A stretch of DNA of 64,000 bases from Octopus sinensis (GCF_006345805.1 NC_043009.1:37324001-37388000), one strand, 5' to 3'. Positions 1,117 through 22,122 are shown, numbered from the stretch's first letter. The notes: a model not told the origin generated them from the sequence alone. Made by a program: numbers and translations.

Positions 1117-1263
1117 CTTCATTATTCATGATGCTATTGCAGTCACATATGGACCATTTAGTGATTTCAAACTGTGGCATTATGTGGACGGCTTTGATCA
1201 TTTGCAGCGCTTTGTCATGGTTGTCGTTCCAATGGAATTGTAGCCTCTTTTCTGTATAAGCAA
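1117..1263 (-). CDS. Cys-loop ligand-gated ion channel (GlyR/GluCl-like) exon: loop B end, beta8-9 and start of loop C
   Basis: Acceptor ctctcgttacAG and donor G|GTTAGT; 147 bp, phase 1/1; reads (F)AYTEKRLQFHWNDNHDKALQMIKAVHIMPQFEITKWSICDCNSIMNNEG, aligning to the GlyR-type FGYTMNDLIFEW...LPQF...CTKHYNTG exon. Confidence 0.94.
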
Positions 1264-1298
1264 CTGTAACGAGAGAACATATACACACATACAATGTA

Positions 1299-1685
1299 AT
1301 GGAAGCACTCCGTCGGTTACGACGATGAGGGTTCCGGTTGATCCGACCAATGGAACAGCCTGCTCGTGAAATTAACGTGTAAGTGGCTGAGCACTCCACA
1401 GACACGTGTACCCTTAACGTAGTTCTCGGGGATATTCAGCGTGACACAGCGAGTGACAAGGCCGGCCCTTTGAAATACAGGTACAAAAACAGAAGCGGAA
1501 GAGAAGAGTGAGAGAAAGTTGTGGTGAAAGATACAGCAGGGATCACCACCATCCCCTGCTGGAGCCTCGTGGAGCTTTAGGTGTTTTCGCTCAATAAACA
1601 CTCACAACACCCAGTCTGGGAATCGAAACCGCGATTCTACGACCGCGAGTCCGCTGCCCTAACCACTGGGCCATTGCGCCTCCAC
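1299..1685 (-). mobile_element. tRNA-derived SINE, family A
   Basis: Minus-strand head GTGGAGGCGCAATGGCCCAGTGGTTAGGG (A box)...GGTTTCGATTCC (B box); near-identical copies at 26289-26675 and 44809-45198. Confidence 0.85.
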
Positions 1686-3120
1686 AACGTAATAAACTGA
1701 ATATGAGTGTAGAAGCAATCACAGCAAAGGAGTGTAAGACCTGTCACATAGAGGATTCGGATATCTATCTGACACATCAAGGCAGCGTGAAACTTGTTTC
1801 GTAGGGGTAAATTTTGGACGCACGTTACACCAAGACAATCTTCCTGTCTGGTAGAAATTATGTTGCAGTAAGTTAGTGGATTTTTTTTTACCATAAGAGA
1901 GGTAACGGAATGAGACAATCTGGTGCAGCTGTTTGGACGCAGATGCTTTGACACCGCTGACGCGAACTTCAGCCTCTTTGGTAATAGTACGTTTTGGCAC
2001 TGGAGCCAAAAACACTCATATACACATGCACGCAGGTGCAGATGTATACACATACAACTAGAAAGAGTGTGAGTGAGAGTGATGGGAGGGAGAGAGAGAG
2101 AGAGATTGTAATTTATTGACTGAACAAGATTGATATAAACACTTTTCCTCTCCTCATACACATATAGAAATATGCTGACACGCATAAACATACAGAGAGA
2201 GAGAGAGAGAGAGAGAGAAGAGAGAGAGAGAGAGAAGTGGAGCGAAAGAGAGAAACATTGAAAAGTCTAATGTCAAATAAATCAGCGTCGAATCAGCGAC
2301 ACCAAATAGGGACGCCAAAACAGCCGTGCCAAAAAAATCTGAAGTCCAGGAAGTAGGCGTGTCACATAAGACTGTAGTATTTTTCTGCTAGCAAATGAGG
2401 AGATACGTCTCAACTAAAGAAAATAGGATATTTTACAAACAGTAAAAGTATCTCATACCTGCTGCGAGGCGAGTCATTTACGTTAATGGGACTGAAATGT
2501 CTGTATGACATAAATCTTGTAGACGAATGTGTGTAGAAGACAACAAGAAAGCTATCATTTGGACGAATATCAGATATCTGTGTGTGATATACACTACAGG
2601 AAGAAATGACGAAGATTATAAAGTCCAATTTAAGAGGTAAGCAGGGTCATAAATTATATTGAGGACTGTAATAAGGCAAATAGATATATGAGATGTATCT
2701 CACCTTGATCATTGAAACTGGGACTAATTTGATGTCATATAGTATGTTGCTTGACTTCATGACTTCATAGCACCACTTTTTTTTAGTGATAAGTTTAACA
2801 TGCATTCCATTTAACACCGCCATGTGGTCCTTAGTATGTCTTTAACAGAGTTCATGCCGTTGCAAGCATTCGATCCAGAGACTCACCAGTTCTCTCTTCG
2901 TCTATATTTTTAATGCATACACTGACCTGCAGATACACTGACCTGTCAGATACACTGACAAGTCATTAGTCTAGTTAATGCTACTAGTCCAGGGGGCCTA
3001 GAAAATGTTATAGGTAAGTACTCCAACTTGGTCCCTGATTAACTTATAAAATATATGTATTGCGTAGATAAATGAAACAGAATGATTATGGTGTAACTAT
3101 AAAGCATCAATGTAACTTAC

Positions 3121-3203
3121 AGCTTTGCAAATGAAGGTAACAAATCTGCTGATCCATCGGGTATTTTTGAAGTTGCATGGGACATGAGGCTCTGAGTGAT
3201 ATT
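3121..3203 (-). CDS. Cys-loop exon of the ligand-gated ion channel
   Basis: Acceptor tttttttaacAG, donor T|GTAAGT; 83 bp, phase 2/1; reads (R)ISLRASCPMQLQKYPMDQQICYLHLQS(F), a canonical C-x13-C Cys-loop with YPMD motif. Confidence 0.97.
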
Positions 3204-4157
3204 CTGTTAAAAAAATAAAGTTACCGGCAGTTAAGAGTTATGTTTAACTTTCATATATATTTATCCCTATTTTCTGTATAAATTGTGAATAAGCAAATGA
3301 GAGAGGATAAGTTTATAAGAATTCTTCCTTGGGCAATAATTGCTTTGAGAATAGAAGTCCTCAATAACCGATTTACGGAAAAAATGACGGGAATTCTCAA
3401 GAATCGATTCTGATTGTTAAATCATTTTAAAATGTATATTGTTTTCACAACTTTTATTTTCGTTTTGCAGCTTTAACGAGAAATTCAAATATTAATCAGT
3501 GTACATAAATAGTAAAAGCGTGAAGGAAAAGTCGTTTTTTCTGTTTTTTTTTTTTAGAATGAAAATAGAAAATCAATAAAGTTATTGAGGTGAAATGGTT
3601 TCAATCAGGAAACGGATGACAGGCTCGATTAAGCTCATGAGAAATTTACCTCATGAGAAATTTACCCCGTGTTCCCAAGAATTCAGTGCAACACGAAAGA
3701 TATAGAGAACTATGGAACAAATTACACTTTTCTTGGCACAAAGCAAGATTAAGTGACAGTAAATTTTTTATTAGTAATTGGTTTCAATGCTTAATGAACT
3801 GGGTGACGAATTAATTAATTATTTGATTAATTGATCACTTAAATTAGAAAGATGGAGATAGCTGGTGTCATTTCTGACAAGCAAAAATGATTAGGATTTC
3901 GCGCTATGGAGATACTTGTGTTTGTACCAGACGTTGCCACTTTATGAGCGTTATTGGTTTAGTCTGGAGGAATAGACTGTATTCATGGCCTTCCCCGGCA
4001 TTCAAAAAGCGATGTAGTAAATACTTTTGAACAGTTAAAAAACTGATAGCTGCAGAAAAGCTAGATATGAGACGGGTATCCTCAAAGATGAACTTTCCGA
4101 GGAAGCAGGAATGGGCTCAGTGATTGGTGTAATATTTGAAGTTGAACATAATATGGA

Positions 4158-20010: not shown

Positions 20011-20247
20011 AATATATTCTTGTATTCATGAAATGGATATACGTGTATCTTTCCGATTGTGCGTGATTTCTTTTTATGAATATCTGCGCATGCGATAAGA
20101 GCACACCTGGTTGAGGAAATTCAAATGGTGTATCCCTGGAATGCTTTACAAATTGCCACTGTTGCTTTTCGCGAATACGTGTCAGTTTCTGTTCTGTTCT
20201 TCCGGAAAACCAAACTATTCAGAAGTTTTTTTGTTTTTTTTTTTGTA

Positions 20248-20652
20248 GGAGTGGCTGTGTGGTACGTTGCTTTCTTACGAGCCACATGGTTCCGCGTTCA
20301 GTCCCACTGCGCGGCACCTTGGGCAAGTGTCTTCTACTATAGCCTCAGGCCGACCAAAGCCTTGTGAGTGAATTTGGTAGACGGAAACTGAAAGAAGCCC
20401 GTCGTCTATATGTATATATACATATGTGTGTGTGTGTGGGGGTGGTGTATGGTTGTGTGTCTGTGTTTGTCTCCCAACATAGCTTGACAACTGATGCTGG
20501 TGTGTTTACGTCTCCGTAACTTAGCGGTTCGGCAAAAGAGACCGATAGAATAAGTACTAGGCTTACAAAGAATAAGTCCTAGGGTCGATTTGCTTGACTA
20601 AAGGCGGTGCTCCAGCATGGCCACAGTCAAATGACTGAAACAAGTAAAAGAG
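20248..20652 (+). mobile_element. SINE family C copy
   Basis: Collinear similarity to 10153-10580. Confidence 0.82.
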
Positions 20653-21414
20653 TATATCTGTTGATACAAATGAAAATCCAGATAGAAAGTTATAAATCAA
20701 CGCATTGATTCTCCACAAAGATTTTCTTTTCTTTTGCATAGTTTTAACCGAGACATTCCCAGCCTCTGGACAGTTTACCTCTACAACCGTGCATGATTTT
20801 TCTTTCTTTTTCTATATTAAACCATCAAGTCTGTGGTGTTTTTATCGGAATGTCATTAATAGGATATTTCACGTATATTTCTTCTGGTTCAGGTATGTCT
20901 TTGTTATGGTCATTACGACAATCTTTTTTGCAATTAGCATTGTAAGTGCTTTCAGCACTAAAGCCATGTCTCATGGGAAGGTACTACCTTGTAAATATTC
21001 TAGGGTAGCTCATGACGATGTGGATGATATCTTCCACATCTATATTGTACAATTACATTTTCTATCGTAGTTTTAGTAGGATATTATTATCATTGCTCAA
21101 GTGTTTAATAGCTACCACCTGTTACTGAATAGCAAAAGTGTTTCGTCCAAGGTGAAAGGCAATATATCTATAAGATATCGAAGTTAGACTACACTTTCTG
21201 ACATTGTTGTCAGCATTTTTACCATTTAGTCAGGTGGAGGTGAGACAATGCACTTGATGCATATTTCACAGCTTCAGTGAATGAAGAAACTGAAAATCTC
21301 GTCCAAATGCGTTCAACAGAATACAACTTTTTAAAGCCACCCATGTGTTAAACTGAGAGATAGATAAGTCTACCACCCCTGAACTCAGGACCATCCATCT
21401 CGCCAGCCAGCCAT

Positions 21415-21830
21415 TCATTCATCCATCCATTCATCCATCCTTCTAGCTAGCTTGCTCGCTAATTATCTGTCCCTCTATCAATCTTTCCATCCATCTATCT
21501 ATCGATCTATTTATCTGACTGTCTGCCTGTCTGGCTATCAATTTATCTATCTATCCGGCCATCCATCCATCCATCCATCCATCCATCCATCCATCAATCC
21601 ATCTATCCATCCATCCATCCATCCATCCATCCATCCATCCATCCATCCATCCATCTATCTATCTATCTATCTATCTATCTATCTATCTATCTATCTATCT
21701 ATCTATCTATCTATCTATCTATCTGTCTGTCTGTCTGTCTGTCTGTCAGTCTGTCTGTCTGTCTGTATGTCTGTCTGTCTGTCTATCTATCTATTCATTC
21801 ATCATCTATCTATCTATCTATCTATCTATC
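21415..21830. repeat. (CCAT)n/(CTAT)n/(CTGT)n compound microsatellite
   Basis: Directly visible, ordered tetranucleotide blocks. Confidence 0.95.
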
Positions 21831-22051
21831 TACCAACACACACAAGATCTACACATATTTAAATATGAATCACTGACAATTTTCTAACTATATCGGCAAT
21901 AATGAAAAGCAAACAAAAAAAAAACAAAAATTATATTTTTTAATATGTTTTTCTTATTCAGACAACAAGTCTAGAATAAGATAAATCAGATTTCGTCATA
22001 AGAGTCATCTGTCTCTAAATATTGAACAAGTTGTAGTAGCTATAAACCTAC

Positions 22052-22122
22052 CTTTATCGAAGTTTGGCGGCAGACGTTTATCATAGACTTGTTCTCGCAA
22101 CATAACTTGTATCAGCAAAGAT
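22052..22122 (-). CDS. Ligand-gated ion channel exon: N-terminal helix and YDKR motif
   Basis: Acceptor ctcttcttcAG, donor AAG|GTAGGT; 71 bp, phase 2/1; SLLIQVMLREQVYDKRLPPNFDK matches the pLGIC YDxRxxP motif and splices in frame to the 15136 exon. Confidence 0.9.

Follow-up and report, generated by a model that had tools for sequence, protein, structure and literature searches.

A 64,000-nt stretch of the Octopus sinensis genome (NC_043009.1:37324001-37388000, here called the window) carries exons 2-6 of an annotated gene, and these exons encode the ligand-binding domain of a pentameric ligand-gated channel subunit. They lie on the minus strand between positions 22122 and 1117, and the encoded domain resembles those of glycine receptors (GlyRs) and glutamate-gated chloride channels (GluCls). 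As read from our alignments, the motif that receives amino-acid agonists is dismantled on both faces of the pocket, and this holds across the clade to which the subunit belongs. It is very unlikely that the subunit works as a canonical glycine, glutamate or GABA receptor. This orphan subunit probably either has an accessory function or responds to a ligand that carries no carboxylate. We favor an accessory role in heteromeric chloride channels and give this reading a probability of about 40%.

Exons were called from stop-to-stop frames and a splice-aware scan of the window, whose sequence around the gene is eukaryotic, AT-rich and repeat-rich. Positions beyond the window refer to the O. sinensis locus from chromosome record CM016871.1 (L008). 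The window runs from L008:75940 down to L008:11941 and is 100% identical to the chromosome record across 64,000 nt. Coding exon 2 (22122-22052, 71 nt, L008:53819-53889) encodes the N-terminal alpha-helix, (R)SLLIQVMLREQVYDKRLPPNFDK. It is bordered by a CAG acceptor and a GTAGGT donor, and its length equals that of the Argonauta hians exon. Coding exon 3 (15136-15069, 68 nt, L008:60805-60872) encodes the beta1 strand and loop G, DLPTRVNVSLDFNSFDSIDEMNM. This exon came from the splice-aware scan and was 100% identical by tblastn to residues 59-81 of the A. hians orthologue. Coding exon 4 (9003-8777, 227 nt) encodes loops D, A and E and shares 85% nucleotide and 96% amino-acid identity with A. 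hians. Its loop D reads NLVVEQEW (Val63, Glu65, Glu67), its loop A reads WVPDIYISNEK, and its loop E is NKMMHLYQNGKIIYRN-R (Met117, His119, Arg129, Arg131). Coding exon 5 (3203-3121, 83 nt) encodes the Cys-loop, ISLRASCPMQLQKYPMDQQICYLHLQS, with Gln157 and Ser158 at its end. Within it, 13 residues separate the two cysteines of the beta6-beta7 loop CPMQLQKYPMDQQIC. Coding exon 6 (1263-1117, 147 nt) encodes loop B (FAYT), loop F and the first half of loop C (KWSICDCNSIMNNE), and ends in phase 1.

All five exons are preceded by a pyrimidine-rich tract and a CAG acceptor and are followed by a GT donor. Joined in phase, they form an uninterrupted frame of 198 codons, and its product matches Pfam PF02931 (Neur_chan_LBD) with E=6.5e-41 and 140.6 bits, against a cut-off of 26. 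The closest solved structures are GlyR alpha3, alpha2 and alpha1 (E=3e-41 to 1e-39), and GABA-A beta and GluCl alpha rank lower. The five spliced exons and the GlyR/GluCl-like extracellular domain of the preliminary description, made by eye from the sequence, were thus borne out, and its limits, 1117 and 22122, are the exact outer exon boundaries.

The other exons of the gene lie outside the window. Positions 22123-64000 are part of intron 1, which is repeat-rich and 43.7 kb long in all. Scanning the window for an ATG with a signal peptide and a phase-2 donor gave no convincing exon 1. Neither similarity to A. hians and cuttlefish N-termini nor tblastn with the true O. sinensis exon 1 found one in the window. 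The exon, which encodes the signal peptide, lies at L008:10001-10104, 1.8 kb past the high end of the window. Likewise, tblastn found no transmembrane exons in positions 1-1116. Exon 7 (M1-M3, L008:80891-81276) and exon 8 (M4, L008:84628-84789) lie about 5 and 8.7 kb past the low end, and both are intact in the same genome, free of the frameshifts and stops for which a check had been proposed. The whole gene has eight coding exons over 74.8 kb, and no further genes were called in the 94.8-kb locus. The GT-AG coding sequence rebuilt from this locus reproduces XP_029643891.2 exactly, including the M1-M4 exons. The gene was therefore not hidden, as first described: it is annotated in RefSeq as "glycine receptor subunit alpha-3-like" (XP_029643891.2 / XP_036364215.1).

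Annotated orthologues were found in O. bimaculoides, A. hians and a cuttlefish. The 198 residues encoded in the window are identical to the O. sinensis proteins at 198/198 positions and to O. bimaculoides at 196/198. A word-indexed protein search, its query padded with X to let in full-length proteins, returned an A. hians protein with 94% identity and an RNA-seq-assembled cuttlefish protein with 85% identity. At the nucleotide level the exons share 85% identity with A. hians and the introns do not align, so an Argonauta origin of the window was ruled out. The 90% cluster of the A. hians protein holds XP_029643891.2 and XP_036364215.1 as well as O. bimaculoides XP_014782555.1, each of which bears the name "glycine receptor subunit alpha-3(-like)". 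The cluster of the cuttlefish orthologue includes Acanthosepion pharaonis CAE1257842.1. In cuttlefish, the orthologue has an intact open reading frame of 415-430 residues on transcripts of about 4 kb, seen in dozens of RNA-seq runs.

Could the gene be a decaying, non-functional copy whose pocket changes are simply damage? We consider this scarcely credible. The sole point for it is the large number of departures from the canonical pocket. Against it, the eight exons are open, the splice sites are canonical and the RefSeq protein is reproduced. The exons have the same lengths as in A. hians. The mature proteins of the two species are identical at 358/380 positions although synonymous sites are near saturation (dS ~1.3), and the ratio of nonsynonymous to synonymous rates (dN/dS), with dS near 1, is 0.022 in the extracellular domain and 0.011 in M1-M3. 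The cuttlefish extracellular domain is 85% identical, its transcript is abundant in RNA-seq assemblies, and the same substitutions are fixed across the clade. A dN/dS of 0.02 argues that the gene is no pseudogene, which we regard as excluded as far as sequence allows. Judged by its exons and codons, the gene is intact, and purifying selection on it is strong.

Two side observations concern the gene and its orthologue. RefSeq isoform X1, which has 416 aa and one more Gln ahead of SNGY, would need a TG|CAG acceptor 3 bases upstream of the canonical AG (L008:84625-84628), whereas isoform X2 uses the canonical exon 8 acceptor. Isoform X1 may be a minor non-canonical splice form or an annotation artefact. 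In A. hians, an intron of the orthologue contains an inverted partial copy of exon 7 (L001:30786-30911, minus strand). It takes in the last part of M3 and the beginning of the intracellular loop, matches at 40/42 residues, and has no counterpart in the window.

The pore can be read from the full protein. The A. hians orthologue matches PF02932, the four transmembrane helices, with E=7e-36. The M2 segment is PARTSLGVLTVLTMTSQ, and Pro-Ala-Arg occupies M2 -2' to 0' (VPARTSLGVLTVLTMTSQ) in XP_029643891.2 and its orthologues. The pore segment, VPARTSLGVLTVLTMTSQTAAAVS, thus carries the Pro-Ala-Arg of anion-selective members, and by this motif the channel is predicted to be anion-selective.

To align the pocket, we used HMMER against GlyR alpha3 from the PDB and two MAFFT alignments; all three give the same reading of loops D, E and B. 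Hand-entered reference sequences of human GLRA1, C. elegans GLC-1 and human GABRB3 served in alignments and trees. They fell 0.01-0.44 substitutions/site from database proteins and in the expected clades, and the PDB alignment gave independent confirmation of the key GlyR positions. In loop D, NIFLRQ(Q/K)W of the GlyRs becomes NLVVEQEW, with F63V and R65E. In loop E, NKLLRI...YSIR becomes NKMMHL...YRNR, with R119H and S129R. In loop B, ESFGYT becomes QSFAYT, with E157Q and G160A, and Phe159 and Tyr161 are kept. All of the substitutions that had been read by eye in these three loops recurred in the three alignments, and none of the alignments restored an Arg in loop D.

Loop C has one extra residue between its cysteines. 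Because of this one-residue length difference the placement of the gap is ambiguous, so that Met or Asn stands opposite Tyr202 and Asn or Glu opposite Thr204. Whichever alignment is taken, positions 202 and 204 are neither aromatic nor hydroxyl. The loss of Tyr202 and Thr204 in the preliminary description therefore stands, whereas its assignment of Met to position 202 depends on where the gap is placed. Phe207 and the closing Cys209 are encoded by exon 7 (ETFSC), beyond the window. The aromatics of loops A, B and C are present, namely Tyr99 and Phe159 in the window and Phe207 in exon 7, and they are conserved in the clade. As a side observation, octopus and Argonauta have an extra Cys two residues before Cys198 (SICDCN; window 1135-1150, minus strand) where the cuttlefish has AIGTCN. 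This extra Cys may permit an alternative disulfide. Since coleoids edit their neural transcripts heavily, RNA editing might change some codons of the pocket, with His119 (CAC), Gln157, Glu65 and Arg129 as candidates. Transcripts assembled from cuttlefish have the key residues as the genome encodes them.

To place the subunit in the superfamily, we searched 1.84 billion representatives by HMMER with the A. hians orthologue and obtained 15,302 relatives. Trees were built with FastTree (157 sequences) and IQ-TREE under LG+C20 (54 sequences). In both trees the subunit groups with its Argonauta and cuttlefish orthologues with a support of 100. It falls in a 22-sequence clade with a support of 95 in FastTree and, in IQ-TREE, 96 by ultrafast bootstrap (UFboot) and 84 by SH-aLRT. 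The named members of this clade are all molluscs: cephalopods, the gastropods Patella, Haliotis, Gigantopelta and Babylonia, and the bivalve oysters, scallops and Solemya. Vertebrate GlyRs, ecdysozoan GluCls, GABA-A beta and Alv-a1-pHCl fall outside. The nearest neighbor is a 14-sequence clade with the canonical motif, whose named members are only molluscs; the fork between them is unresolved in both trees. Two members of this neighboring clade, putative GluCls, carry the loop A Arg together with a loop B Ala. Within the subunit's own clade there are three cephalopod paralogue lineages. The paralogue XP_029644196.1, of the same clade, is on the same 72.3-Mb CM016871.1 record and spans about 206 kb.

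All rows of the clade share a signature, after which we call it the "Arg129" clade: no Arg65, His119, Arg or Lys129, Gln, Lys or Arg157, and Phe159-x-Tyr/Phe161. The pocket is thus a mark of a clade spanning bivalves, gastropods and cephalopods, and not, as first presented, a peculiarity of this gene or of cephalopods. The phylogeny, which the preliminary description had proposed, did not place the subunit in a characterized molluscan clade, and no characterized receptor was found that shares these residues. In the literature searched, we found no characterized clade member and no paper citing these accessions.

Pocket residues were counted in 20 clade members and 14 neighbors, with entropy in bits; the mean over the extracellular domain of the clade is 1.30. 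At position 65 in loop D, the neighbors have Arg in 14/14, whereas the clade never has it (E7 T5 Q4 V2 D1 H1) and the entropy is 2.26. Position 67 is Glu in 15/20 clade members and Lys or Arg in 13/14 neighbors. In loop E, position 129 is Arg (16) or Lys (4) in the clade compared with Ser (13) or Thr (1) in the neighbors. Met117, His119 and Arg131 are invariant in the clade, and His119 is also found in 13/14 neighbors. R119H is therefore uninformative on ligand class, because the motif-bearing neighboring clade has His119 too. Position 157 in loop B is Gln in 17/20 clade members and mixed in the neighbors (E5 S3 A2 Q2 G2). Tyr99, Asn102, Ser158, Phe159 and Phe207 are nearly invariant in the clade and largely conserved in the neighbors, which have Tyr for Phe at 159. 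In M2, position 19' is Val, Ile, Ala or others but never Arg in the clade, compared with Arg in most neighbors, and position 6' is Leu in most members of both groups (Val in A. hians). From these counts, basic 129, acidic 67 and Gln157 stand out as the conserved novelties of the clade.

The tip of loop C behaves differently. At positions 200-205 the clade entropy is 2.6-3.4, compared with Tyr202 in 10/14 neighbors. Between Octopus and Argonauta, 5/8 residues of the tip differ, compared with 6/190 elsewhere (Fisher p=1e-5). Such a hotspot between orthologues argues against a conserved ligand contact there.

In receptors of this family, the Arg of loop D, the Ser of loop E and the Thr of loop C hold the agonist carboxylate, and when the Arg is replaced, sensitivity to amino acids disappears or falls drastically (PMC4338433; PMC4006026). 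This Arg is absent from anion channels gated by amines or acetylcholine, and also from subunits whose complementary face plays no part in agonist binding (Lynagh & Pless 2014, PMC4006026). For these reasons we hold a canonical amino-acid receptor to be very unlikely. At the first position of loop B, an acidic residue (Glu157) favors glycine or GABA (PMC4338433). For lophotrochozoan glutamate recognition, Lynagh et al. 2015 point to an Arg in loop A together with a small uncharged first residue in loop B (PMC4338433). The octopus subunit has Ser at this loop A position (IYISNEK), begins loop B with Gln and has no loop D Arg.

Under the accessory reading, the subunit would join motif-bearing GlyR/GluCl-like subunits, or its own paralogues, in a chloride channel. 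There it would modulate assembly, gating or pharmacology and would form no conserved transmitter site itself, in parallel with GlyR beta and with the non-binding faces of GABA-A beta, gamma and delta. We favor this role because both faces lack the canonical contacts and because the tip of loop C varies freely even between orthologues. Also in its favor are the loss of the M2 19' Arg, which GlyR beta lacks too, and the presence in each genome of several paralogues alongside potential partners that carry the motif. The loss of the loop D Arg fits as well, by the rule cited above. Several points weigh against it, however. Accessory subunits that bind only with their principal face, such as GABA-A beta, keep a conserved loop C, and no known accessory pattern fits exactly. 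The aromatic box (Tyr99, Phe159, Tyr161, Phe207) is conserved together with His119, Arg/Lys129 and Glu67, as in a real ligand site of a different kind. A variable loop C tip would be expected if the ligand offered no carboxylate to Tyr202 and Thr204. Moreover, many invertebrate orphan subunits were later reported to respond, as homomers, to amines, choline or betaine.

The main alternative is a receptor, homomeric or with paralogues, for a transmitter without a carboxylate: a biogenic amine, histamine, acetylcholine or choline, or another small cation. We consider this possible, though on balance unlikely. In such a receptor the Phe159/Phe207 box might hold the ammonium, and Glu65/Glu67, His119 and Arg129 might hold the rest of the ligand, an arrangement that we also propose only tentatively. 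The conserved aromatic box fits this proposal, and the loop C residues that bond a carboxylate would become dispensable, which would account for their variability. Summed over positions 65, 67 and 129, the net charge goes from +2 in the neighboring clade to -1 in the cephalopod orthologues, which also speaks for such a receptor. However, Glu65 varies within the clade, so there is no shared acidic contact; it is a lineage detail and a weak basis for an amine ligand. The preliminary description had proposed an orphan gated by an amine or another non-amino-acid ligand, or a structural subunit. The departure of the pocket on which it built is upheld, and both of its alternatives are compatible with the published rule on the loop D Arg. 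The acidic loop B residue is also replaced, by Gln157, and even the orthologues of Octopus and Argonauta disagree at the loop C tip, whereas known amine-gated channels have conserved loop C aromatics. Among anion channels gated by amines or acetylcholine, HisCl1, ACC-1, MOD-1 and LGC-55 do without the loop D Arg (PMC4006026). Orphans of octopus and C. elegans have lately been deorphanized as amine or acetylcholine receptors. A screen of 41 O. vulgaris ligand-gated channels against 18 ligands gave hits only in the nicotinic-like branch, which speaks against such a receptor, although it is not known whether this gene was included (Courtney et al., bioRxiv 10.1101/2025.04.02.646353). In that study the GABA-A-like branch is collapsed in the tree, and the supplement lists DopC and AChRB genes only.

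The subunit might instead still bind an amino acid or another carboxylate, with the basic residue moved from strand beta2 (Arg65) to the neighboring strand beta6 (Arg/Lys129, where the GlyRs have the Ser129 that contacts glycine). The exchange is perfectly coupled: Arg65 in 0/20 and Arg/Lys129 in 20/20 clade members, Arg65 in 14/14 and Ser/Thr129 in 14/14 neighbors. Basic residues at new places have precedents in the loop G Arg of ecdysozoan GluCls and the loop A Arg of lophotrochozoan GluCls (PMC4338433), and in the loop C/G Lys of cnidarian GluCls (PMC13335744). In all of these precedents, however, the loop D Arg is retained. The octopus subunit has also lost the Thr and Tyr with which loop C holds the carboxylate, and its loop B Glu157 is now Gln. 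Furthermore, Glu67, joined by Glu65 in cephalopods, probably pairs with Arg129 and neutralizes it. Taken together, we judge a relocated carboxylate contact to be quite improbable. A little less probable still is gating by protons or a metal ion, or constitutive activity. The invariant His119, the titratable Glu65 and Glu67 in the pocket and the unconstrained loop C tip are compatible with it. The precedents are the proton-gated Alv-a1-pHCl of Alvinella, the pH-sensitive chloride channels of insects and mites, and ZAC; GlyR-like anion channels that ignore glycine are reported from lophotrochozoans and arthropods. Nevertheless, Alv-a1-pHCl keeps the canonical residues and shows no specific kinship, His119 also occurs in the motif-bearing neighboring clade, and no sequence feature points specifically to a pH sensor. 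Finally, the "Arg129" clade as a whole might be a functional class of chloride channels specific to molluscs, whose rewired complementary face (without Arg65, and with Glu67, His119 and Arg/Lys129) would bind a transmitter by an undescribed mode, with the octopus gene as its cephalopod representative. We regard this as a speculative and rather doubtful proposal. Molluscan neurons are reported to give fast, molecularly unidentified chloride responses to histamine or dopamine, which are a lead to the role of such a class. The accessory role thus remains the reading that we favor.

The introns contain several kinds of repeats. An interspersed repeat of about 425 nt occurs in three copies with 87-88% identity (10147-10578, 20243-20654 and 40988-41414), all in introns of the channel gene, and more copies are found elsewhere in the O. 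sinensis locus. A short interspersed element (SINE)-like sequence of about 150 nt occurs on both strands at 8554-8682, 9840-10059, 22549-23031, 24185-24570, 33768-33934 and 61343-61682. Its translation contains "...PRRNLNSERN...". Copies with 72-78% identity are present in the A. hians locus, so this is an old octopod repeat family. Intron 3 contains an open frame of 132 codons (14406-14801, minus strand), "...LYGSETWATTKREEQRL...RWAGHVARL". We take it to resemble the C-terminal tail of ORF2 of a retrotransposon without long terminal repeats (non-LTR), and Pfam gave no match to it. Overall, the Pfam scan of six intronic open reading frames suspected as transposon remnants gave no match. Long microsatellite and low-complexity tracts (trinucleotide, (TG)n and (TATG)n-like) at 5074-5683, 7539-8022, 12150-13565, 15540-15790, 17495-17851 and 27075-28014 give many spurious long open reading frames.

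The gene is an uncharacterized member of a known superfamily, and its orphan class has been noted before: Lynagh et al. 2015 already noted lophotrochozoan subunit classes without the motif and did not describe them (PMC4338433). As far as we found, what is new is the explicit signature, the coupling of Arg65 loss with Arg/Lys129 gain, and the hypervariability of loop C. The clade pattern (Arg65 lost, Arg/Lys129 gained, loop C free and the 19' Arg lost) gives a testable handle on one of the 2015 classes. Under the name "glycine receptor alpha-3-like", the gene and two paralogue lineages would be counted as glycine receptors in octopus brain, which is unsafe in view of the pocket. Should the subunit turn out to be a receptor that recognizes a new ligand or binds in a new way, it would join the recent unconventional ionotropic receptors of octopus. 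As an accessory subunit, it would give a first hint that GlyR/GluCl-like channels of molluscs can be heteromeric. In both cases, the result is incremental in a well-known superfamily and adds no new kind of system.

Compared with known systems, the subunit shares with vertebrate GLRA1-3 the fold, the Cys-loop, the loop C disulfide, Phe159, Tyr161 and Phe207, as well as WxPD and NEK of loop A, the Pro-Ala-Arg in M2 and a short intracellular loop. It differs from them in that Arg65, Arg119, Ser129, Glu157, Tyr202, Thr204 and the 19' Arg are replaced and 6' Thr is changed to Leu, and the vertebrate GlyRs form a separate clade. GABA-A beta has also lost the loop D Arg and has Gln there, and GABA-A gamma and delta lack this Arg as well. 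The complementary face of these subunits and of GlyR beta binds no agonist, and they work only in heteromers. However, GABA-A beta, which binds GABA with its principal face, has a conserved loop C, and GlyR beta has retained the loop D Arg. All of these subunits are only distant paralogues of the octopus subunit.

The ecdysozoan HisCl1, MOD-1, LGC-55 and ACC-1 are likewise anion-selective Cys-loop receptors without the loop D Arg. They belong to other clades, however, and no sequence-specific resemblance of the pocket was found. Alv-a1-pHCl of Alvinella pompejana is, like the octopus subunit, a lophotrochozoan GlyR-like anion channel and is reported to be gated by protons and not by glycine (Juneja 2014). 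Its extracellular domain was transcribed from the supplementary alignment of Courtney et al. As a candidate for a characterized relative with the same pocket it was ruled out: it keeps Arg65, Ser129, Glu157 and the loop C Tyr-x-Thr, and it lies elsewhere in the tree, outside the clade.

Octopus chemotactile receptors, to which the subunit had at first been likened, are also a cephalopod Cys-loop family with a divergent pocket. The analogy does not hold further, as they belong to the nicotinic branch, which in the octopus tree is set apart from the GABA-A/GlyR-like branch of the present gene; they are also cation-selective. A further system is the molluscan "Aplysia-like" GluCl/GlyR-like clade (Kehoe 2009; Lynagh 2015). 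It is the nearest neighbor in both trees, with about 40-45% identity, and shares His119 and 6' Leu with the octopus subunit. However, it keeps Arg65 in 14/14 members, Ser/Thr129, Tyr202 in 10/14 and the 19' Arg, its putative GluCl members add the Arg of loop A and the Ala of loop B, and the clade of the octopus subunit has none of these.

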